Shown: positions 27,768-39,489 of the stretch, piece after piece
Layout of the letters: each line of letters begins with the position of its first letter
Numbering within the stretch: position 1 is the first letter of the stretch
IMG/VR virus record: IMGVR_UViG_3300022839_000006
Coordinates: 124,001 to 188,000 of that record
Length of the DNA: 64,000 bases
Direction: 5' to 3' (one strand)
Translations under genes and position numbers: made by a program
Notes under the pieces: model-generated
Told to the model about the DNA's origin: nothing
Databases searched by the model: none
Seen by the model: only the letters and a program-made list of their open reading frames with translations

Positions 27768-29480
27768 TTATTTTGTATACTTCAACTTTCCACAATCATA
27801 CACTTTTAAAAACCCGTGATTTAGTGCGTTCTGGTGCTCTGTCAATTCGGGACAAAAAGTGTCAGGATACTTTGCTTGGAGTTTGGCTCTTGTCATTTGC
27901 CTCCGAGGGATTCTCCTCTTTGTAGCTCTACAGTAGTAAGTGTAATCTGGTTTTGTCTGATGGGTCAGACTCATCCCCGACTTTTGATATATGTTGTTTT
28001 CAAAATCAGTCCACAACAAATCAGCATACGTGTAGACGTTGGTAACCTTTGACATTATTTTTGACAGTCCACCTACAACAGGGAGTTTTGACGCAAATCT
28101 TGTAAGATCGTGACTGTCACCATACCGCTTAAATGTCGCAACAGAAACCAACAGACCCTCATGCTCGAGGCCTATGTTGAAAGAGTGATTGACATTCCCT
28201 TGAATGTGATGATGCTCGAGAAACTCCTTACAATCAACATCATATACTACTTTTGTCTTTCTTGCCCCTATAGATATATCTGATGGCTCCAAAAGAGACA
28301 TGATTTTTCGTCGGATTAGATCTGGACCATCTCTTAGATCATCTTCAAACAGGTGGATCAATCTTATACCATTATGTGCAGCATCTTTCTTTTTGTCTAA
28401 ATGATAATTTGTAGGTTTGAATTTCTCGGAGTGCCAATAACAACCATTTATTTCAAACCCTATGTTATAATCAGGGAGAAAGATGTCAATCTCCTTACGG
28501 TCACTCAACAATGTTCTATCATTGAATATAGGAGAATAATCAGCTAGCCATCTACCAACCATGTGCTCGTAGGATGAAGGCTGTCCAATTCCCTTTCTCA
28601 GAATGTCGAAACTATCAAGCATCTCTGCTACAATAGGGTGGCTGCATCCTAGAAATTCGCCCATTTGCTCGAGTGACATCGTTTTATAAAGTTCCTCCAA
28701 CAGAACTTTGTCGTAAAGACCTTCAATGTTTTCTCTTGGTGTTCCTTTTGTAAACACACCCAGTTTGTGTATTTGTGTGTTGATTATGTGATTCTTGACC
28801 TTATATTTTTTCGCAATCTGTGGTATCGTATATTGCTCTCTTAGTTTACGTAGAGTATCAGCACTCTGTATGTCTATATGAATCTCTACATGTGTGTTTC
28901 TTTTTGTGTCTTCTCCAGACTGTTTAATAATATCTGATGCTGTCTGAACACTACAGCCAATTTCTTTTGAACATTGTGTGACATTAGAACCGCTATGCCA
29001 TTGTTTTAATATCTGTGTTTTCACACTCTCTACATCGAACTTAAACTTGTCAAACTTTTTGTACTTTTTGGCCCACTTGGTTACAGTAGAGGGTGCATGT
29101 CCTGTAATTGCTGATATTCCAACAATTGTCTCGCACGAATCGAATAGGATAGGATCGAAGGGGATTGATTTAATCACAACAATCTTGCTAATTCTCACAA
29201 ATCTTCGAACAGAATCTACTGGAACCTCTAACCTGTCTGCAATGACTCTGCAATTGATATTTCCGCTAATATAATCATCCTGAAACTCACAGAACCTACG
29301 CGCGACAATATCATAGAACGTCTCCCTCAATACTACGCCCCAACGATCTGCAAGTTCCTGCACCGACGAAGACGATACGCCGTACGTATTTGCAATGGAA
29401 GAGAAGCTCTCTCCCGAATCGATTAGATCCTGAAAAGAGCTTCTATTAAGAACAGACGTAAGTGTTCCTCTTTTAGACAC
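27768..29480 (-). mobile_element. Hef-like (Vsr/DUF559-type) free-standing homing endonuclease with HTH repeats
   Basis: SSYE...EIDIFLPDYNIGFEINGCYWHS...GIRLIHLFEDD; multiple N-terminal HTH-like repeats; GTG start overlaps the folE stop. Confidence 0.75.
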
Positions 29481-30187
29481 TATGCGCGATTACCTGCAAA
29501 CTGCTGCTGCATTTTCACATTGTCAAAGAACTCTTGCTTGACACTTTGGTTGAAGAATTGTCCCCTAAGTTCTGTTGTTTGAGTCAAAGAGCTGTTTGCC
29601 ATCACTCCTCGTGTGGAACAACATCCGTGTGTAGCTTGGATGTAGACAGCAACATCACGCGTTTCTGTCGCCTTGCTGATCTCGTTAGCAATGTCCATCG
29701 TCAACTGCTCTTGGAGTGTTCCACGACGTGCTGCATGTTGAGCAATTCGAATGTACTTCGAGAGCCCGATCACACTTGATGATGGCAAAACTCCGATATA
29801 TGCGACACCTTGAACGTCCTTGTGGTGGTGACTACACATTGAGTGGATCTCTGCACGTACAACAATCATTCCGCTATACCGTGTATCAGGATCAGTGTTT
29901 GGGAATGAAGTTACAGGTGGAGGTGGCGTGTAGCGACCTCGCATCGTTTCGTTGATGTACATCTTTGCAAGACGCTTTGCTGTTCCCATTGAGTTTGGAT
30001 CTGTATTGCGATCGATAATTAGAGAGTCGAGTACACCTTCAAACTTAATTGCCAATTCATCGATCAGCATATCCGTTTCGCCCTCTTCAATGAATGGCGA
30101 TATGTTGTCATTTGCCCAGAAACGGCTATTACTGTCTTGTATCCGCGCACGTATTGTCTCGGAGATTGTTTTGTTTTCTTTCGTCAT
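29480..30187 (-). CDS. folE: GTP cyclohydrolase I
   Basis: SMCSHH, IGLSKY.R, R..LQE.LT, HGC...RGV; start MTKENK. Confidence 0.95.
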   Translation of the reverse strand: MTKENKTISETIRARIQDSNSRFWANDNISPFIEEGETDMLIDELAIKFEGVLDSLIIDRNTDPNSMGTAKRLAKMYINETMRGRYTPPPPVTSFPNTDPDTRYSGMIVVRAEIHSMCSHHHKDVQGVAYIGVLPSSSVIGLSKYIRIAQHAARRGTLQEQLTMDIANEISKATETRDVAVYIQATHGCCSTRGVMANSSLTQTTELRGQFFNQSVKQEFFDNVKMQQQFAGNRA

Positions 30188-30285
30188 GTTTGTAGTGCCT
30201 TTCAGATTGTGTTTTATGTCAGTGGAAAGGAGCGAGGACTGACACACTCGGCCAACAGAAAACCTTACGGTGCAACCTGTTGGAA
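30188..30285 (-). promoter_or_regulatory. Candidate riboswitch (SD-occluding pseudoknot) in the folE leader
   Basis: Hairpin CCAACAG/CUGUUGG, then stem UGUCAGU/ACUGACA whose loop CCUUUC is complementary to the SD GAAAGG. Confidence 0.5.
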
Positions 30286-30299
30286 AGTCTTGTTGCTTT

Positions 30300-30740
30300 C
30301 TATTGTTGTTCCCAGGGAAATGTGACCCAGGGCGCATCGGCTGGGATCAACATGGCTGTCACATCACTGTTGAATATGCTATCTACTTTTGTAACAAGTG
30401 ATGCGTATACGACGTTGTCTGTGCCGCCATACACATTGTTTATTGAGTTAAAAGTATGACCAGTATCATTGATGTCGTCAACAAATACAACTCTTTTACC
30501 TGATTTTATACCTTCTTTGAGTTCAGAGTTGTGCTCACACTTCTGAACATCGCGTGTTTGCCACACAATAGTTTGGAGCGGCAACTCAAGATGGTGTGAT
30601 AGGTAAAGAGCAGGAAGAAGCCCCCCTCTTGTAATTCCTACAATAATGTCAGGACTATGTGTTTCGACGTGCGTCCTGAGGTGTTTACACATGAGATCAA
30701 TATCATTGTAGCTGATATGCATTTTAGCGACTGTGCTCAT
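30300..30740 (-). CDS. Type I purine phosphoribosyltransferase (Gpt-like)
   Basis: GITRGGL, PRPP-binding VFVDDINDTGHT, W..FPWE. Confidence 0.9.
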   Translation of the reverse strand: MSTVAKMHISYNDIDLMCKHLRTHVETHSPDIIVGITRGGLLPALYLSHHLELPLQTIVWQTRDVQKCEHNSELKEGIKSGKRVVFVDDINDTGHTFNSINNVYGGTDNVVYASLVTKVDSIFNSDVTAMLIPADAPWVTFPWEQQ

Positions 30741-30897
30741 TTACGTGCTCCTATTGTAGGCGGAATGAACGACAGATCTGCTTCATTCAATCAGATCTGT
30801 CGTTTGTATGTTAGGTTACGATTTGGTTTTCAAATCGATACACGTGAACTCTTGCAGCTACGTTGGGTGTGGGCACAAGAGGCTCACCACCTTGATG

Positions 30898-31782
30898 TTA
30901 CGCTAAACTGGCATAGAGGTGAATCTGAAGATTGAGAACGTAACCGTGTTCGATGCAGTATTGTGCTGCATATTCATGATTACGTTGATTTGCATCCATA
31001 TCCAACAATCCAGGTTCCCAGAAGCTAATTACCTCATCGACTGTAGATCTTTCTCCGATCTCAATTCTATTTGCTCCACTGTTCCGCAACTCCTTACTCT
31101 TTATTGGCTCGTCGTTGTATACGTTCATTGGACTGATGTAGATTGGCTTGTTTGTCTTTTCGTGCCATTCTTGTGCCCACTCTGGAATTGAGCTGTATGG
31201 GCTGTCCGGATCCGCTTCCATCACGAACTTCAAACAATCCGCATCGATCATGTTGTCTTTGTGTGGTTTGATGTACTTGCCCATCATTCCACCCTTCTCG
31301 ATGCACTTTGGACTCATAACCAAAACCGTTGTTTTCGGAATACTCGATTGATGAACGATCCCATTGGATTCGATTTGAGTATTCTTAAATACCTTATTCA
31401 TCCGTTCCAACAGCGGTCCAATATTCTTCTGTAAGAGGGGTTCACCACCCGTCATTACAAGAACCACTTGCTTTTTAATTCCCGTCAACGGATCATGCAA
31501 AGTCCAATCAGGACGATTCATCCCCTTGTCTGAATAGAATTTGTCTATTGCTGTTTCGATGTTCGCATCGACCTCGTCGAACGTCATCCAATCGCCATCA
31601 TCAAAGAATGTGTCACAAAAACTACAAGCCAGATTACATTTTGCTAATCTAATAAAGAAAGCTGGTTCGCCCCGGAATGGCCCTTCCCCTTGTAAGGTCA
31701 TGAACATCGAAGTGACGAACAACTTGTCTTCTTCTGCGTCCTTAAAATATTTTTGTCCTACTATTTCGTTTTTTCCAAACAT
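30898..31782 (-). CDS. queE: 7-carboxy-7-deazaguanine synthase (radical SAM)
   Basis: TLQGEG...FIRL..CNLACSFCDT, TGGEPLLQ, IESNG, SPK, LQ.H. Confidence 0.93.
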   Translation of the reverse strand: MFGKNEIVGQKYFKDAEEDKLFVTSMFMTLQGEGPFRGEPAFFIRLAKCNLACSFCDTFFDDGDWMTFDEVDANIETAIDKFYSDKGMNRPDWTLHDPLTGIKKQVVLVMTGGEPLLQKNIGPLLERMNKVFKNTQIESNGIVHQSSIPKTTVLVMSPKCIEKGGMMGKYIKPHKDNMIDADCLKFVMEADPDSPYSSIPEWAQEWHEKTNKPIYISPMNVYNDEPIKSKELRNSGANRIEIGERSTVDEVISFWEPGLLDMDANQRNHEYAAQYCIEHGYVLNLQIHLYASLA

Positions 31783-31846
31783 TACATGTCCTTATTTCTT
31801 GAGTGTTGAAATTTCATTGATCAGTTGAAACTGTGTGTCGTTCACT

Positions 31847-32491
31847 TTACGGTGTGCCACAAGAGCATTCATGATCTCCTTGCTCGATTTTTGTTAGATG
31901 TGACCAGGATCCAAGACGCTCAATCGCATCGATTGGCGCTTCCCAATCCCATCGTGATTTGATAGGAAGAGTTTCGTGACCGCCATCAATCTTACTATTT
32001 GCATCAGCAAAGGCTGTTTGTTTATCTACTTCGCACATTGCATCGTTGCGGTTGTGCTCATATACACGTACACGTTCTACATAACAGCGTCCGTCCGTTA
32101 CCTTATACACGTAATGGTTGACGTGCTCCCAGATAAACAGCGAGCTCATTTCCATAGATACACCACTTGGCAATACACGCAACGTGCCAAGTATGCCACC
32201 AGGCGCTGTCAGTTCGGACGTGATTTGTCCAAGTCTCGGATCGTCAGCAGGAAGTACTGTGACGTGATCGAAGTAATATTCGAGGAAGTGTTTCACAGGA
32301 CCGAGTTCACCAAACGGAACAATCCATCCATGTGGATCAATCTCTCCTGCAAATGTAAACTCAACTTCACGATCGTATCCGTGAACGCTTGCACAATCAC
32401 CTGGCGTGCCGTCAGGATTCTTGTCAAAATGTTGTGCATGGCCACACGGAAGGTACTTGAACACCTTCGTTGCCTTAATTTGTATTGCCAT
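31847..32491 (-). CDS. queD: 6-carboxytetrahydropterin synthase
   Basis: CGHAQ...CASVHGY, FDH, S.E, V.E...N motifs of the QueD/PTPS family; adjacent to queE. Confidence 0.85.
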   Translation of the reverse strand: MAIQIKATKVFKYLPCGHAQHFDKNPDGTPGDCASVHGYDREVEFTFAGEIDPHGWIVPFGELGPVKHFLEYYFDHVTVLPADDPRLGQITSELTAPGGILGTLRVLPSGVSMEMSSLFIWEHVNHYVYKVTDGRCYVERVRVYEHNRNDAMCEVDKQTAFADANSKIDGGHETLPIKSRWDWEAPIDAIERLGSWSHLTKIEQGDHECSCGTP

Positions 32492-32551
32492 TGTAAATAC
32501 TCCTTTGATTATCGGTCGGAGTGTTTAGAGAGGGTCGATCCGTAGTCCTCT
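32492..32551 (-). promoter_or_regulatory. Candidate preQ1-I-like pseudoknot riboswitch in the queD leader
   Basis: AGAGG-ACUACGGAUCGAC-CCUCU-CUAAACAC-UCCG: 5-bp P1, loop CGGA pairs with 3' UCCG; the same 3' strand can instead pair with the SD. Confidence 0.55.
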
Positions 32552-32559
32552 TGCTTAAT

Positions 32560-33021
32560 CTATTGTACGGCATTTCCATAGTTGACGTCAACAAAATTGT
32601 CGCTTATAGACGTGCCGTAATATCTGTACCAACTAGGTTTAGATCGGATTCGCTCGACGACTCTTGCTACATTCACAGCGAGATCTACACTGTTGGGGAC
32701 CCAATCTTGCCACAGACCCTCAGCTCGTTGAAACACTGTCCAATCTATCACCCTTTCTTCTGGTTTCATGTTATAACCACGCATACGCAACTCAGCGATT
32801 AGGCTATGGTACCTGTTTAAGAGATACAGGCCCTTGTCGTAGTGAAAGGTTACGTGTCCCTTATTTAGCGTATAATTCTTAGGGATCCGTCCTTTGACTA
32901 GTCCACTTTTTGAGTCTAATGTGCGTCTCAGAGATGCGTTGACCATAGGCAATTCCCTATATTCAGCCATTGCATGTTGATCTGTGAGTTTCGATGGAGG
33001 AATCACGTTAATTCTAGTCAT
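32560..33021 (-). CDS. denV: Pyrimidine-dimer glycosylase, endonuclease V
   Basis: MTRIN...L.DQH.MAEYRELP and L..GHV.F.YDK. Confidence 0.95.
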   Translation of the reverse strand: MTRINVIPPSKLTDQHAMAEYRELPMVNASLRRTLDSKSGLVKGRIPKNYTLNKGHVTFHYDKGLYLLNRYHSLIAELRMRGYNMKPEERVIDWTVFQRAEGLWQDWVPNSVDLAVNVARVVERIRSKPSWYRYYGTSISDNFVDVNYGNAVQ

Positions 33022-33263: not shown

Positions 33264-34976
33264 TCAAGCGAAAAAGTCTTCCAACGTGTCAACCTTTGTG
33301 GCAGACCACCCCAATGAGTCGAGAATGTTTTGAATTGGATCTAGGAACACTTTTGAGAACTGCTTCTCTCTGTCAACGTAATTGTCTATTTCCATTTCAG
33401 CAGGAGGACTCTCAATGAACGATATTATATTTTCGCGAAGAGGATTCGGCAGCTTCAAGTACACGAACTTGATTTTGTCTCCTGACTGTATAAGAGGATA
33501 ACGATTGACGAGGTCATTGTCTACAGTCCACTTGTTTGATAGAAGACAACCACGGATGTGAATTGGACAGGCCTTTTTGTATATCGTCCTTGGATCAGCA
33601 TAGCCATCCACGTCGTTGGTCCCAGAGACCTTAGCTATGTGTTGAACAGACAAACCAAAAAACTCCTCCTTGAAGTCTCTTATAAATTCCTGTGTCTCAG
33701 ACTCGCCTTGCGTAACAATGATCTTAAACGCTTCAAAAAACTTCTTTCTACATATTTCTGGTGTAGAGCTTCTTGCCGCATCAATTCCCGTGACAGACAC
33801 CTTTGGCTCATCATAGTGAACACCCTCACTATTAAGAACATTTAATATGTATCGCTTCTTTGCAACAAAGATGGCCTTGTCTGCAATCTTTTCACGTTTC
33901 ATTTTCATTGCATTACGATATGCACCCATTCTTTCAGCTAAATCATCATACGCATCGTCAAGCAACGGCTCAATCTTTTCTTTGCACACTTTGTCAATAA
34001 AAGACTCGCCTTGCTCGCGCGTAACATTGACGGTTCCAAACACCTTTTCGACGAGTGGACCAAGATTGACATACACACTGTCTGTGTCGCAATACACACA
34101 ATAATCAACATCTGTCGTTTTGAGCACTTTGTTTACGTACATGTTAATTGCCTGTGCGGCCCACTTGGTGGAAAGCTGTCCTGACGTTGTAATGCCCTCA
34201 GCCATGTCACTAATGTAGTAGATAAAAAATGCGTTGGCTGTACTTCCATAAAGTCCGTTCATTAGAATCTTGATGGACATTTGGCTGTTGTGTAGCTGGG
34301 TTATCAGCTTTTTCAACCGTACAATTTCATCCTTCGTTGTTGCTATCTCAAGCTCAGACTCTGCCATGAGCATCTTTACTTTGATCTCTGCACGTTCGTC
34401 GTAGTATCCTTGAATGATCTGAGGAATGATCCCCTCACGTTCTTTAGAGAAGCAAGCTCCATTTGCTGCTACTGCATACTTGGTCGTGTTTTTGTAGTTG
34501 CCGTCTAGTACAATCTGTTGTGACACGTCCTCTTTTACGTTGTGTTGATATGTTTCTGGTGACATGTTGTATTGCATCATTAAGTGCGGATAAAGGCTGT
34601 TAAGGTCAAAGGACACAACCCAATCTTTCATTCCCTTTTGTGGGTCCTTTACATATCCACCAACGATGCCCCTTGCACTTTCCTCTGATGCAGATTTGAT
34701 GAATGGTACGCGTCCTTGATCCATTAGGGCTCTGAATATAGTGGTATCCCACAGTCCCACAGTTCCAAACGCCTCGTTAAAATTGACACCACTCTTGTAT
34801 GCAACAGTAAACGACAGTGCAAGAAGAGCTACTTGCTCTTCAAACATCTCAACAAGCCTCGTGTCATACAAGTTGTAATCCAATCCAAGCTGATAATATT
34901 CACGATCGGCAAGGTCGGAATACTTGCGATGCATTTCAAGCAACTGCTTGTCCGTTAGGTCCTTCATATCTTCCAT
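33264..34976 (-). CDS. gp43: Family B DNA polymerase gp43, C-terminal subunit (ExoIII + polymerase)
   Basis: YNLYD (ExoIII), DLNSLYP, K..MNGLYG, YCDTDS, KKRY, clamp-binding tail LEDFF; own GGAGA SD. Confidence 0.93.
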   Translation of the reverse strand: MEDMKDLTDKQLLEMHRKYSDLADREYYQLGLDYNLYDTRLVEMFEEQVALLALSFTVAYKSGVNFNEAFGTVGLWDTTIFRALMDQGRVPFIKSASEESARGIVGGYVKDPQKGMKDWVVSFDLNSLYPHLMMQYNMSPETYQHNVKEDVSQQIVLDGNYKNTTKYAVAANGACFSKEREGIIPQIIQGYYDERAEIKVKMLMAESELEIATTKDEIVRLKKLITQLHNSQMSIKILMNGLYGSTANAFFIYYISDMAEGITTSGQLSTKWAAQAINMYVNKVLKTTDVDYCVYCDTDSVYVNLGPLVEKVFGTVNVTREQGESFIDKVCKEKIEPLLDDAYDDLAERMGAYRNAMKMKREKIADKAIFVAKKRYILNVLNSEGVHYDEPKVSVTGIDAARSSTPEICRKKFFEAFKIIVTQGESETQEFIRDFKEEFFGLSVQHIAKVSGTNDVDGYADPRTIYKKACPIHIRGCLLSNKWTVDNDLVNRYPLIQSGDKIKFVYLKLPNPLRENIISFIESPPAEMEIDNYVDREKQFSKVFLDPIQNILDSLGWSATKVDTLEDFFA

Positions 34977-35070
34977 AGAGTCTCCGAGATTGGTTATTTT
35001 TCAAAAAGAGGATTCATAGTACAACGAAACATTAATTCTGATGCTTAACAGAAATAGTAATGGACACAAG

Positions 35071-36117
35071 CTAGACAGAAAGTCCTCTACGCTGGATTTC
35101 TTCCAGCAAAACGTCCCTTCGTTTTACACACATTTCTCCATGTGTCAGTACATCATCGGGAAGGTCGCGCGATATTTTTACGTCCTTGGCTCCATCAGAA
35201 ATGAATCGGTGAGTATCAACTTTGTTTCCGTGCGCCTCATAAGAAAGCTTCTTTGTGCCAAGTACAATCGTAGCGACGTTATCAAGCTTGTATGACTGCA
35301 TCGTGCCGTACTTGTATCCGAACTTCTTAAATGCATTCATGTAATCGACAATGCTGATACCGCTAATTACGTATGTTTTTTGCATCTTATTGAACATCTC
35401 GAACGACCGTTCGCGAACATGTCCCCACGGCGAAAGTCGTTTGACAGCAGCCATTCCAAGTATGTTTTCAATTCTCTTTACAATATACGTGATGTCAAAC
35501 AGCTCGACGTTCCACCCCGTGACAACATCTGGATAGTCACTACACCACAAATCGACAAACCTGTTCAGCATGTCATACTCTGATTGACACTTGTGGTACT
35601 TGATCAATGAGGGATCAATTCCTGTTATAGTCTTTTCTGGATCGTAGTCTTTTGTACCAAACATGTAGTAATTAGACGATTTAGACGATTTAATTGCGAC
35701 AGACGTAATCTCGTTGTCTGCAGTCTCCATGTCAGGCTTCTTCTTGCTGATATCTACCTCGATGTCAAAGGTAAAGATGTTAATCAGCGAAGGATCAAAA
35801 TCAATGGTACCAGGATACATGTCATATGTGAAAGACGCGACGTAATTGGTATTCCCACACATGACCATGTTCTGAACGTCTTTGTACCTCTCCACAAATT
35901 CTGTTGCACGCTTCATGTCATCACACTGGATCGACTTCAATGGCCTGTCACCTATTAACGACACGTGCGATGGCTTTTGGTCCTCATTCTGACGATCCTC
36001 TACGTAGAATGTAGGCTGATACTTGACCTTCTTGTAGAACCGTTTGCCGTTGTCATATCCTGTCCATAGGATATCATTTCCATAACGTTCGATCTTTGTG
36101 TACATCGTGTTGTTCAT
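35071..36117 (-). CDS. gp43: DNA polymerase gp43, N-terminal subunit (NTD + ExoI/II)
   Basis: FDIEV (ExoI), TGWNVELFDITY (ExoII), SYKLD.VA...LG..KL.Y, then a ~50-aa non-polymerase tail. Confidence 0.92.
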   Translation of the reverse strand: MNNTMYTKIERYGNDILWTGYDNGKRFYKKVKYQPTFYVEDRQNEDQKPSHVSLIGDRPLKSIQCDDMKRATEFVERYKDVQNMVMCGNTNYVASFTYDMYPGTIDFDPSLINIFTFDIEVDISKKKPDMETADNEITSVAIKSSKSSNYYMFGTKDYDPEKTITGIDPSLIKYHKCQSEYDMLNRFVDLWCSDYPDVVTGWNVELFDITYIVKRIENILGMAAVKRLSPWGHVRERSFEMFNKMQKTYVISGISIVDYMNAFKKFGYKYGTMQSYKLDNVATIVLGTKKLSYEAHGNKVDTHRFISDGAKDVKISRDLPDDVLTHGEMCVKRRDVLLEEIQRRGLSV

Positions 36118-36175
36118 TGATTGTCCTTATATGATCTGCGTGGATTCTTCATTATGCATCAAAACGTACGAAACA

Positions 36176-37906
36176 TCAATTGTCATCATCTGCTGATTCA
36201 GCCACTTGGGTGAAATTCTTCACCTTCTCGAACTTGAGGTGGCGATCAAATCGCTCAGTGAAAGCATCACCACGGTGGGTAATGACAAAGATGTTGTCGT
36301 TTGCATTTAGCTTTTTGAGGATCTCAAGGAGCGAATCTACTCCTTGTGCATCGCTACCGCTGTCGAGTATCTCGTCCAGAATTAACAGGTTGGTCGAGAC
36401 ACTGTTTCTTAGTTTTGATAACGCTCTCCATGAGAACAGCAGGCTCAGGTTGATTCGCATCTTTTCGCCCTCTGAAAATGAGCCGAACGAAAACGTATCA
36501 CGGAATCTGCTTTTTATCACTTCGTTGAAATTCTCGTCAAGATTAAAGTCTACAAACAACTCGAACCCTGAAAGATATTGATTAATTAGCGTGTTCATTA
36601 TTGGAATGTAGGTCCTGACAATACTCGTCTTGATTCCTCCATCCTTTAACATTGTTGCCACAACACCAAGAGTCTCTCTTTGTTCGTACAAATCTGTCTG
36701 AACGCCTTCTAAGTCTGTCAAACTCGCCGCATATTCAACAATTCTACTTTGATCGATCTCCCGGACGTCCTTTTCAGCAGATTGTAGTTCTTCCTTGATG
36801 TTGTTTAGTTGATTGATGGTCATCTTGACTGACAAACGACATTCACTCGCCTTGGTGTGCAATTTCTGAATGTCGTCTTCTACGACAGATATTTCTTCCA
36901 GTCGTTGTTCCAGTGCAGTTTTTTTGTTTTGAAGTTGGACAATGCCATTTCCAAGCTCGACGCCTCTGCTTGTTTTCTCCTCAACAACAGCCTGTTTGAA
37001 TTCGTGTTCAATTCCCTGCTTGCAGGTAGGACAGTTGTCATGTACAGAGTAAAAGTCAATCTCTTTTTCAAACGTTTTTTGTTTTGTGTCGAGATCGTAA
37101 ATCAATTCTTTGACTTTTTCGTGTGATGTCTTCTGCTTGGATTTATCACGGATCGTCGTTGCTAGTTCTGTAATATTCGTCTCGTATCCTTCTATCTCAA
37201 CTTTGTCACGCTCTACTGTAGTAAGATGCTCCGATATTCTTAGTTTGAGTTTATCAACCTCTGTTAGTTTGAGTTTTCGGATCTCTACATTGTGTTCTTT
37301 AGCGGACGTGATTTTCATCTTCAGCAAATCAACAGAATGGTTGTTGTCCGATATAAGCGTCTTGTTTGAGGATATCCGATCCTTTAGCAACGTGTTCATC
37401 GTACTGAACACTTGAATGTCGAGGAGATCTTCGATTATTTCCCTTCGTTGGCCTGTAGGAAGGTCCATGAACGGGACGTACGTTGCACTTCCCAAGATTA
37501 CAATTTGTGTAAATGACTTGTAGGTCATTTTAAGAATAGACTGTTCCAAATAATCCTGATAGTCTTTTGAGGCTGCATCCTTGTTGAGTATTACACCGTC
37601 CTTGAGGACCTCAAATATGTTTGGTTTGATTCCTCTGCGAATTGTGTAGTCACTCGACCCTATTGAGAATTCAACTTCGACGAGCATGTCCTTTTGGTTG
37701 ACAGAATTGACAAGCTGTGGCTTGTTTATTTTTCTGAAACTACGACCATACAACACAAAAACAATTGCCTCAATCATCGTTGACTTGCCTGCACCATTAC
37801 TGCCTGATAGCAACGTGGTCTTCACGTCCGTGAAGTTAATTTCGACAAATTGATTTCCGACAGAAAGGATGTTTTTATATCTAATGTTCTTAAAGTGAAT
37901 ATGCAT
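36176..37906 (-). CDS. gp46: Recombination endonuclease subunit gp46 (Rad50-like)
   Basis: G.NGAGKST, CPTC hook, FSEGEK, LILDE. Confidence 0.95.
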   Translation of the reverse strand: MHIHFKNIRYKNILSVGNQFVEINFTDVKTTLLSGSNGAGKSTMIEAIVFVLYGRSFRKINKPQLVNSVNQKDMLVEVEFSIGSSDYTIRRGIKPNIFEVLKDGVILNKDAASKDYQDYLEQSILKMTYKSFTQIVILGSATYVPFMDLPTGQRREIIEDLLDIQVFSTMNTLLKDRISSNKTLISDNNHSVDLLKMKITSAKEHNVEIRKLKLTEVDKLKLRISEHLTTVERDKVEIEGYETNITELATTIRDKSKQKTSHEKVKELIYDLDTKQKTFEKEIDFYSVHDNCPTCKQGIEHEFKQAVVEEKTSRGVELGNGIVQLQNKKTALEQRLEEISVVEDDIQKLHTKASECRLSVKMTINQLNNIKEELQSAEKDVREIDQSRIVEYAASLTDLEGVQTDLYEQRETLGVVATMLKDGGIKTSIVRTYIPIMNTLINQYLSGFELFVDFNLDENFNEVIKSRFRDTFSFGSFSEGEKMRINLSLLFSWRALSKLRNSVSTNLLILDEILDSGSDAQGVDSLLEILKKLNANDNIFVITHRGDAFTERFDRHLKFEKVKNFTQVAESADDDN

Positions 37907-38967
37907 TACAGATTCAAAGCCTCCTGATAGAGATCGTCGACCACGGTCTTGATCTTTATTTTGTTAATTTTTGTGTCAACCAGATCTATGTATGTGTGCA
38001 TCACGTCTTTGGTATCTTTTGCTCCATCCATCACAACATCAACGCCAACATCAGAAAGATTTAAGACATCCTCTACAGCTTTAACATCTGCAGCATTGCT
38101 GTCATTGAGACGGTTCATGAACATATCATACAAGTAAGGATTGGTGCGGTTCTTTACCATTACCTTGACATAACAACCATCTAACATTGACAGATCAAGA
38201 GATGTAATCTCATCAATTGTCAAGTCCGAATCATCGTACTCTAGCTTGTGGTGTATTGTCGACTGATTAGCAACAAATGTCAACTCTCTTGTTTCACAAT
38301 CAAGTAAGTAGAATCCGCGCTGTGAGTTGTAATCAGACCAGCTCATTTCGTATTGAGCGCCGAGATAACGTACATTACCGTATTGGGAAGGGTGATGAAA
38401 ATGTCCTGAAAACACAGATTCAAAGTGGCTAAACTTTTTGTGATCGTCACCGTGATCACTGACAAACCCCTTCATCATCTCAAAGCCTTTTAGCTCGAAA
38501 TGTCCCATCAAAATGTGAGCTGTTGATTGTTGAACAGTGCTCATCGAATCAGCATAGTTTTCCTTTACGAGCCACGGACACATCATTATCCGCGTCTGAT
38601 CAAACTGAAGTTCGACAGGATCCTTCTCATAAACATGAATATTTTTGTACTCTTTTAACAGTAAAGACGATGAATTCACATCGTTTGTTGTTGTATATGT
38701 GGTATCGTGGTTACCGAGTATTGTGTGCATGGTAATATTCTGATCGCGTAGCACATCGAAAAAGAATTCTTTGCTACGCTTCAGTGTTCCAAAGCTGATA
38801 TATTTTCTACGGTCAAACACGTCACCAAGATGTAGGACCGTGTCCACTCCGTGTTTAGCCAATGTTGGGAAAAACGTATCTGTGAAGAATTTAGATTGGT
38901 GATCAAGGAAGATCTTCGAATCGTTTCTTACGCCAAAGTGCGTATCGTTAAGTAGCGCTACCTTCAT
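37906..38967 (-). CDS. gp47: Recombination endonuclease subunit gp47 (Mre11-like)
   Basis: DTHFG, LGD.FD, GNHD, SGHFH. Confidence 0.95.
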   Translation of the reverse strand: MKVALLNDTHFGVRNDSKIFLDHQSKFFTDTFFPTLAKHGVDTVLHLGDVFDRRKYISFGTLKRSKEFFFDVLRDQNITMHTILGNHDTTYTTTNDVNSSSLLLKEYKNIHVYEKDPVELQFDQTRIMMCPWLVKENYADSMSTVQQSTAHILMGHFELKGFEMMKGFVSDHGDDHKKFSHFESVFSGHFHHPSQYGNVRYLGAQYEMSWSDYNSQRGFYLLDCETRELTFVANQSTIHHKLEYDDSDLTIDEITSLDLSMLDGCYVKVMVKNRTNPYLYDMFMNRLNDSNAADVKAVEDVLNLSDVGVDVVMDGAKDTKDVMHTYIDLVDTKINKIKIKTVVDDLYQEALNL

Positions 38968-38970
38968 ACA

Positions 38971-39489
38971 TTACTCCTCGCGCTTTTTAGCTTTTGCCTT
39001 GTCTCTTGCAAGTTTGTCTTCAAAGTCGCCAATGAAGGTGTCGATATAGTCTGCATCAAGACTAAGGTTCAATCCTATCTCACTGCCACCGACGTGCGTT
39101 TCGCCCATTGCAAGTAGCGCCTGTGAGGACTTGAGTTTTGTGTAGAGGAACTTCTTCTCTTTTGCAATCCGGCGCAAGAAAGCGAACCAAATGATCTGAG
39201 TGAAATATGCAAACGGATTGCTCGATTTAGCTGCATCGAAATTCTCGATGTACAGCAGCGAGTTTTCTATTCCATCCATAACCATGTCCTCTCTGAAGGA
39301 ATATCCTGAGAAGTTAGGCTTTGATGATAGTCGATTAGAAATGTGGTAAATACACTCTCCAAGATAATTAGGAACAACGGGAAGCTGTTTACTTGCATCT
39401 CTCGCATCTTGACAGTTCTTCTTGTGCAGGATTAGCGCTTCGAGAAAGTCAGGATTGTTCACGTAGTTTCTCTTTTTTCTCTTTTGCAT
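38971..39489 (-). CDS. gp55: Late sigma factor gp55
   Basis: YVNN..F, NF.GY....DM..DG.EN, NPFAYFTQI...AF.RRI.KEK. Confidence 0.95.
   Translation of the reverse strand: MQKRKKRNYVNNPDFLEALILHKKNCQDARDASKQLPVVPNYLGECIYHISNRLSSKPNFSGYSFREDMVMDGIENSLLYIENFDAAKSSNPFAYFTQIIWFAFLRRIAKEKKFLYTKLKSSQALLAMGETHVGGSEIGLNLSLDADYIDTFIGDFEDKLARDKAKAKKREE

Follow-up and report, generated by a model that had tools for sequence, protein, structure and literature searches.

How can a DNA polymerase be encoded as two polypeptides that part inside its proofreading domain, and what placed the break there? This question is raised by gp43, the T4-family DNA polymerase, in a stretch of 64,000 nucleotides (positions 124,001 to 188,000 of the IMG/VR record IMGVR_UViG_3300022839_000006; hereafter the window) that belongs to a 208-kb T4-like virus record of salt-lake metagenome origin. 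Related gp43 proteins are unsplit and approximately 843 amino acids (aa) long in thousands of sequences, whereas the window contains two adjacent open reading frames (ORFs) of 348 aa (43A) and 570 aa (43B) on the same strand. An earlier reading of the nucleotide sequence (the original prediction) had noticed this arrangement and proposed that extra peptides zip the two halves together, and that the split could be the scar of a lost homing endonuclease. Our analysis suggests that this two-subunit polymerase was probably made by a mobile cassette, and that the endonuclease gene of this cassette was later lost in the window's lineage.

The two ORFs together account for an entire gp43. 43A matches the Pfam family DNA_pol_B_exo1 (PF03104, E = 4.6e-23) and, as its top match of known structure, the N388 exonuclease fragment of T4 gp43 (1noy, E = 6e-31). 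43B matches DNA_pol_B (PF00136, E = 2.9e-26), aligns with RB69 gp43 from residue 316 onward, contains polymerase motifs A, B and C, and ends with the conserved sequence ...TLEDFFA, the clamp-binding tail of T4-family polymerases of family B (PolB). The feature set of a T4-family PolB is complete and distributed across the two ORFs. Pfam matches, alignments and invariant columns locate ExoI and ExoII in the first ORF, and ExoIII (YNLYD) along with the polymerase in the second, as the original prediction had it. The break maps between T4 residues ~310 and 314 (RB69 ~316), which is within the exonuclease domain, between ExoII and ExoIII.

Comparison with unsplit sisters reveals what was changed at this site. 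The closely related P0002 is 77% identical over residues 1–293 of 43A and, starting past the N-terminal extension of 43B (the head), 79% identical over 86% of this chain's first 200 residues. Relative to such sisters, about 19 native residues (...DYSEYGTLTELYNKNPQLY...) are replaced by xYExFGN followed by a C-terminal extension of 43A of 50 aa (the tail) and by the head of about 31 aa. The break had been placed after KKLSYEAHGN, with some 50 foreign residues gained by the first chain and some 20 by the second. Fifty residues do follow this point in 43A, but homology to T4 and cyanophage gp43 continues into the first ~17 of them. The extension of 43B is also real, but approximately 28–31 of its residues lack a counterpart and only about 11 of these are a net addition; the rest substitutes the native helix before ExoIII. 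The extensions are indeed absent from unsplit sisters, but "foreign" describes them poorly, as they are conserved and selected modules of a wide clade that appear to travel with the cassette.

This conservation is evident from a length-restricted protein search with 43A. The homologues gathered are 336–348 aa long, 33–67% identical, and end with a common tail pattern (x-I-D-T-H-R-F-I-T-D-G-A-K-D-V-K-I-P ... P-D..L..G-E...K-R-R-D....E-I..R-G-L); the heads share the pattern M.....L[ST]D.EL....KY.DLADxEFYQLG over about 31 aa. Among 1.84 billion representatives, a profile of the tail matched no more than seven clusters; five of these are gp43 pieces, further distant split lineages (P0201) among them. 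Thousands of related gp43 sequences that are unsplit lack the insert, and it occurs only in split alleles, apart from four proteins (P0012–14 and P0199) in which tail and head form a single in-frame insert without interruption. The ratio of nonsynonymous to synonymous divergence (dN/dS) between the window and the related assembly L012 amounts to 0.10 in the tail and 0.03 in the head, compared to 0.036 and 0.029 for the cores of the two chains, which points to purifying selection on both extensions.

Two salt-lake metagenome runs, dating from 2018 and 2020 and independent of each other, both contain the 3-kb stretch with the two ORFs in colinear form and show no alternative joints. Two additional assemblies (including L012) encoding ~95% identical protein have the same layout with a gap of 97 nt, such that this endonuclease-less state is represented by three assemblies and two independent runs. 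Given these independent assemblies and the signature of purifying selection, we can dismiss both an assembly artefact and a pseudogene as the origin of the split. Neither a megablast search with the locus nor a tblastn search with one tail returned a match among 50,697 deposited phages, so that no cultured phage is available for comparison.

The loci of more distant relatives indicate what may have broken the gene. We examined eight loci from other lineages that are split at the same position (L008, L009, L010, L011, L014, L015, L016 and L017), and all eight contain an ORF of 230–289 aa between the polymerase pieces. These genes lie within gaps of 731–896 nt, compared to only 94–97 nt in the window's lineage; in L011 the gene has the same orientation as gp43, and in the other seven lineages the reverse one. 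The encoded proteins match phrog_655, "homing endonuclease", with E values from 1e-19 to 1e-36, the L011 protein additionally matches Pfam HNH, and all are homologous to each other and to the HNH domain of T4 MobE (E = 2e-16 and 2e-10). Since an endonuclease gene separates the halves in each of these lineages and none does so in the window, we class the window as an endonuclease-less derivative of the same cassette. The suspected scar of a homing endonuclease is thereby supported by the relatives. We also observed a T4 late-promoter-like motif, TATAAATA, just upstream of relatives' endonuclease genes and on the endonuclease strand; this motif is absent from the window's gap.

The distribution of the split is best described as that of an element that moves between alleles. 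On a maximum-likelihood tree built on the N-terminal 290 residues (the exonuclease domain), the 11 split rows are scattered among unsplit sisters and require at least 10 changes of state. Split alleles mostly pair with an allele that is unsplit at this site, and several of these pairs are strongly supported (P0001 + P0002, 99/86; P0011 + P0024, 100/99; P0005 + P0022, 99/89; P0006 + P0016, 100/90). Furthermore, the identities of tail and endonuclease co-vary and disagree with those of the polymerase core. The core of the window's polymerase is nearest to L008 (71%), whereas its tail is nearest to L010 (64%) and L009 (58%), versus 42% for L008; L008 in turn pairs with L014, at 63% identity for the tail and 64% for the endonuclease. 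Mobility is seen most directly in L009 and L017, two contigs of one metagenome, which share a block of ~1.2 kb at 98–100% identity, while the gp43 flanks are only 43–80% identical at the DNA level. This block begins near codon 280 of 43A (SYKLDHIA), takes in the tail, the endonuclease gene and the head, and ends near codon 35 of 43B (LDYN), which is the expected product of homing with co-conversion of flanks. It documents a recent lateral transfer between co-occurring phages, and suggests that these three parts are transferred jointly as a single cassette. Because the nearest relatives of the window's core, P0002 and P0004, are unsplit at the site, the window's lineage would also have received the cassette laterally, a step that is easiest to envision with an active endonuclease.

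These observations also bear on the order of events. Instead of arriving with the break, Mob-like endonuclease genes may have settled later in a gp43 gene that a short untranslated spacer had divided beforehand. Such a course was proposed for Aeromonas phage 25, which carries a seg endonuclease, versus phage 44RR, which has only a spacer, and the free-standing endonuclease genes of T4-like phages are usually intergenic (PMC2988022). The two orientations of the endonuclease gene could likewise mean more than one entry, and the window's gap holds no relic of such a gene. Later settlement would however have to explain why all eight other lineages contain an endonuclease and why all copies are homologous, why tail and endonuclease co-vary, and why the block shared by L009 and L017 holds tail, endonuclease gene and head as a unit. 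The unsplit state of P0002 and P0004 also points to lateral receipt of the split rather than to an old spacer. For these reasons we consider a break that preceded the endonuclease unlikely, and favor the cassette as the cause of the split.

The gap of the window itself is compatible with two independently translated cistrons. We counted the 94 nt proposed earlier, and the fresh Shine–Dalgarno sequence ascribed to the second ORF is present as GGAG before the ATG of 43B. The string GGAGACxCTATG at this start is common to the window, L009 and L017, and the start most likely lies three codons upstream of the MKDL assumed in the original prediction (MEDMKDL...). All three frames of the gap are closed by stop codons, 43B is in the +1 frame, no Rfam family was matched in the gap, the fold z-score of 0.79 is unremarkable, and no promoter- or terminator-like site was found in it. 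A tblastn search of the gap with six endonucleases returned only noise, and no copy of the endonuclease was found elsewhere in the 208-kb genome. As a separate observation, 13 of the 94 gap positions (34977–35070) differ from the corresponding gap of L012 (L012:3904–4000), in addition to one 3-nt indel. Since this divergence (~14%) compares to a synonymous divergence of 0.42–0.62 in the flanking ORFs, the gap appears more conserved than neutral sites and may contain a signal for translation or regulation of 43B.

Could the two ORFs nevertheless give rise to a single chain, by trans-splicing of a split intein, by an intron or by ribosomal bypass? There is precedent in that split inteins with free-standing endonucleases occur in "fractured genes" of phage-like metagenome loci, one of them endonuclease-less (PMC2677866), and genuine split-intein halves exist in the same gene family, where three ORFs of the P0002 locus L007 match Intein_splicing. 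The same Pfam library that recognizes these ORFs, which serve as a positive control, found no match to intein/Hint or any other family in tail, head or continuous insert at E ≤ 10, consistent with the earlier statement that intein motifs are missing. The first residue of the tail varies (K, N, L, H, I or S), the junction of head and native sequence lacks HN-C/S/T, and the ~80 aa of tail and head combined are well below the size of any known intein. An intron or a programmed bypass of the T4 gene 60 type finds equally little in the gap, with its stops in all frames, the +1 position of 43B, the empty Rfam search and the ordinary fold score. Where such a bypass would show a stable hairpin, a downstream part without a start of its own and a conserved gap length, the fold is unremarkable, 43B has its own ribosome-binding site and ATG, and the gaps of relatives span 731–896 nt with an ORF inside. 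We therefore regard restoration of a single chain as extremely improbable.

For mobile elements, gp43 of this clade represents a hot spot also beyond the exonuclease site. In L010 (5802–8357) and L017 (4935–7038), gp43 comes in three pieces, being split both in the exonuclease domain and at the fingertip of the fingers; the ORF at the latter position is endonuclease-like in L010 (PHROG) and without assigned family in L017. L005 (5001–8791) also encodes a three-piece gp43, with a continuous exonuclease insert and a break just past motif A that is followed by a GIY-YIG endonuclease gene and a polymerase fragment of 118 aa. L007 (6957–8951), the locus of the nearest relative of the window's core, encodes a 500-aa 43A followed by ORFs of 183, 209 and 233 aa that correspond to an intein N-part, an intein C-part with a Hint N-part, and an intein C-part. 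In this phage, genuine split inteins look to have broken gp43 twice more in its C-terminal half, resulting in a four-piece polymerase.

Taken together, these data are consistent with the following model. The cassette would consist of ~65 codons that end in the 50-aa tail, a gene for a MobE-like HNH endonuclease, and a head of ~31 codons. Inserted between ExoII and ExoIII in place of ~19 native residues, it would provide the stop codon of 43A as well as the ribosome-binding site and ATG of 43B, and homing with co-conversion would carry it from one diverged gp43 allele to another. The lineage of the window would then have lost the endonuclease ORF and been left with the untranslated gap of 94 nt and both coding ends, which we propose were retained because the enzyme had come to need them. 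Translation would yield two separate polypeptides, with 43B initiated independently at GGAG-ATG, most probably on a transcript shared with 43A, and the two would reassemble non-covalently. At the N-terminus of 43B the head would extend the ExoIII helix, the tail helix of 43A would pack antiparallel to the head helix, and the conserved THRFITDGAKDV segment would also lie against 43B. This clasp would supplement the native intradomain contacts and complete a composite proofreading site, in which 43A contributes the ExoI and ExoII carboxylates and 43B contributes the Tyr and Asp of ExoIII.

Structure prediction supports the proposed arrangement of tail and head. In the AlphaFold2 model of the continuous-insert protein P0199 (mean predicted local distance difference test score, pLDDT, of 84.6), a tail helix (residues 323–340) is followed by a four-residue turn and a long helix (345–384) that comprises both head and ExoIII. 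The tail helix scores a pLDDT of 92–96 in P0012 and P0199, and the long helix of P0199 scores 93–98; the P0012 run was based on a shallow alignment and has low confidence at about residues 261–305, while the P0199 run used a deeper one. The turn of the hairpin in these models coincides exactly with the break point of the split alleles. A two-chain model of 43A and 43B from the window reached an interaction prediction score from aligned errors (ipSAE) of 0.86 in three runs, compared to 0.00 for three controls; 58 of 80 solved complexes and 2 of 110 mismatched pairs reached that mark. The predicted interface includes tail residues 302–313 and 325–348 (with i, i+3/4 spacing), head residues 4–20, and residues 22–46 of the ExoIII helix. 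The notion that the extensions zip the halves together thus received support from modeling, and the two chains may assemble through this clasp into an active enzyme.

It is conceivable that the insert serves primarily as a functional add-on, for example as a docking arm for a replication or recombination protein, and that an endonuclease landed in this tolerant loop, so that joining the halves is a side effect. Alleles with a continuous insert do exist and fold confidently, and conservation of the THRFITDGAKDV segment exceeds what a simple zipper would require. This segment lies however within the predicted interface of 43A and 43B. The thousands of unsplit gp43 proteins lack the insert, which besides the four continuous sequences is confined to split alleles, and in L009 and L017 it travels with the endonuclease gene. 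A weak and repeat-inflated resemblance to BRC repeats would also suit a docking function, but neither a BRCA2 repeat nor any other Pfam family is found in the insert. We judge a primary docking role to be improbable. The resemblance itself concerns the tail segment HRFITDGAKDVKI, which is similar to the core of BRC repeats (...GFTTAGGKEVKIS...). It stems from the repeat protein P0202 with an E value of 1.3e-4 that rests on seven summed weak repeats; with no Pfam BRCA2 repeat matched, this likeness is probably due to chance.

Tail and head may also form a portable heterodimerization clasp that is carried by a homing endonuclease, an idea that we put forward tentatively. If true, such a clasp would constitute a third route, beside self-splicing introns and inteins, by which a selfish endonuclease can enter an essential gene without lethality: the host protein is cut and re-joined non-covalently by cassette peptides on each half, in this case across a catalytic site. 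The ~80-aa module might then be transplantable as a small natural split-protein tag.

The first residues of the tail may have a history of their own. HMMER and tblastn extend the homology to T4 and cyanophage gp43 into the first ~17 tail residues (NKVDTHRFISDGAKDV vs T4 NKLRETNHQRYISYNIIDV), and the tblastn/phmmer alignment of 43A continues as NKV-DT--HRFISDGAKDVK vs T4 NKLRETNHQRYISYNIIDVE. Since homology continues past the break as first stated, the start of the tail could be a degenerate ExoIII-like segment. When ~470 positions were scored with a position-specific scoring matrix (PSSM) built on the tail motif of 14 residues, the ExoIII window came first in 8 of 22 cyanophage-like gp43 proteins and within the top three in 11 of 22; only 2 of 500 column-shuffled motifs scored as well. 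Against the PQLYLDYNLKDT of the local clade the motif does not stand out, and profile–profile comparison of the tail with ExoIII by hhalign was negative. H, F, I, G and A are invariant in the segment. A partial duplication at the origin of the cassette, followed by degeneration of Tyr-Asn to Asp-Gly, is a plausible source of this putative copy. We expect no catalytic role for the segment because its Asp is not conserved among tails.

Several points weigh against the model of a cassette that split gp43, lost its endonuclease and left a clasp behind. Endonuclease loss, rather than never-gain, is argued from the distribution of the gene, because the 94-nt gap holds no detectable remnant. The continuous insert of the P0012/P0199 type may be ancestral or may result from secondary re-fusion. 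The ipSAE is a measure of model confidence and may in part reflect memory of the single-chain structures of RB69 and T4 gp43; such memory may affect the core interface and not the clasp, which has no solved counterpart. The pairing of tail and head in trans is deduced from an uninterrupted model and from the periodicity of contacts. Finally, the homology of the tail start to ExoIII is no more than moderately supported, given a positive PSSM test and a negative hhalign comparison. Table 1 lists the features discussed, including the likely remnant of the cassette; its extent, deduced by analogy to the L009/L017 block, would be close to the coordinates given in the original prediction.

Table 1. 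Features of the split gp43 locus (window coordinates unless a locus is named)
Feature	Position	Strand	Remarks
43A	35071..36117	-	348 aa; N-terminal domain and first part of the 3'-5' exonuclease domain; from ORF list
43B	33264..34976	-	570 aa; ExoIII, remaining N-terminal domain, palm, fingers, thumb, C-terminal tail; from ORF list
ExoI motif D118-I-E120	35758..35766	-	D118, I119 and E120 invariant; aligns with T4 DIEV
ExoII motif N203..F207-D208	35494..35511	-	F207 and D208 invariant; aligns with T4 GWNIEGFD
True ExoIII motif Y34-N-L-Y-D38 of 43B	34863..34877	-	D33, Y34, N35 and D38 invariant; aligns with RB69 YNIID
Tail of 43A, residues 299-348, C-terminal extension	35074..35223	-	missing from unsplit sisters, conserved in every split allele
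Most conserved tail segment VDTHRFISDGAKDVKI, residues 300-315	35173..35220	-	possible degenerate ExoIII-like copy; predicted contact with 43B
Amphipathic tail helix, ~residues 325-346	35080..35145	-	equivalent helix in P0012/P0199; interface spacing i, i+3/4
Head of 43B, residues 1-31, N-terminal extension	34884..34976	-	no counterpart in unsplit sisters; lengthens ExoIII helix
Untranslated gap	34977..35070	-	exactly 94 nt; empty site compared to relatives' endonuclease gene
Shine-Dalgarno GGAG of 43B	34982..34985	-	5 nt before ATG at 34974-34976
Putative cassette remnant	~34872..35280	-	~43A residue 280 to 43B residue 35; from L009/L017 analogy and identity drop vs P0002
Late-promoter-like motif TATAAATA	L008:5527-5586; L010:5736-5804; L014:3949-4003; L016:4752-4820; L011:5009-5061	endonuclease gene's strand	

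The polymerase genes follow homologues of gp55, gp47 and gp46 upstream, in the order gp55–gp47–gp46–43A–43B (33264–39489). No gp45, gp44, gp62 or regA lies between gp46 and gp43, unlike in T4 and the cyanophage loci L001 and L002. Directly downstream of 43B, an ORF on the minus strand (32560–33021) encodes a DenV-like pyrimidine-dimer glycosylase. By synteny with the 95%-identical L012, the minus-strand genes in 29480–33021 continue after this ORF with a QueD-like PTPS, a radical-SAM protein, a phosphoribosyltransferase and GTP cyclohydrolase I. Together, these genes suggest that the phage DNA carries 7-deazaguanine modifications.

Two kinds of known systems come close to this locus. The mobE-split nrdA of phage Aeh1, reportedly the subject of Friedrich et al. 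in 2007, is closest by mechanism, and the 43A/43B pairs of Aeromonas and Acinetobacter T4-like phages, which Petrov et al. are said to have described in 2006 and 2010, are closest by gene. In the nrdA-a/mobE/nrdA-b arrangement of Aeh1, an essential enzyme gene of a T4-like phage is likewise cut near the active site by a free-standing HNH gene of the Mob family, and two polypeptides must reassemble (PMC2988022); the endonucleases of the window's relatives are homologous to T4 MobE. The present case differs in that the host gene is gp43 instead of nrdA and that the window contains no endonuclease gene. It also differs in that the cassette carries conserved tail and head sequences with a predicted clasp, and that its lateral spread among diverged alleles is directly visible.

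Split gp43 is known from the T4-like phages 25, 31, 44RR, 65 and 133 of Aeromonas and Acinetobacter, and the 43A and 43B subunits of phage 25 co-purify and are active (PMC2988022, PMC3061061). These genes also form two adjacent cistrons, with an endonuclease gene in the gap of phage 25 and only a spacer in 44RR, much like the relatives compared to the window. The break in these phages is located at the fingertip of the fingers domain (PMC3061061), as the original prediction stated correctly, and is associated with a GIY-YIG endonuclease. The window lacks a fingertip break; its split lies in the exonuclease domain, is associated with HNH endonucleases in relatives, and comes with dedicated extension peptides. 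None of the family B polymerases reported to work as two gene products divides the exonuclease active site (PMC3061061). Judging from the locus described here, a family B polymerase appears to tolerate a break through the proofreading site, a position that is not among the reported natural splits.

A third parallel is provided by fractured genes (Dassa et al. 2009, PMC2677866), in which phage replication genes are arranged as an N-terminal part with extension, an endonuclease gene, and an extension with C-terminal part, including an endonuclease-less variant (gp41-7), and in which the invading element provides stop and start signals. The extensions in the window are however not intein halves, as they contain neither intein blocks nor nucleophiles and total only ~80 aa, so that we expect the product to consist of two non-covalently held chains rather than a ligated one. 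The N388 fragment of T4 gp43 (1noy) finally illustrates that the N-terminal and exonuclease part can fold alone, although N388 contains ExoIII, whereas 43A ends before the true ExoIII and would at most include a degenerate look-alike.

How endonuclease-split enzymes reassemble was described as an open question in a review of T4 mobile elements (PMC2988022). The locus in the window offers a concrete and testable answer for one case, the predicted helical clasp that is conserved and carried by the cassette. Unsplit alleles, alleles with a continuous insert, and split alleles with and without an endonuclease gene provide natural sets for comparison. What distinguishes this system from those known before is the point of the break, the conserved cassette-borne clasp, and the direct evidence of lateral spread.

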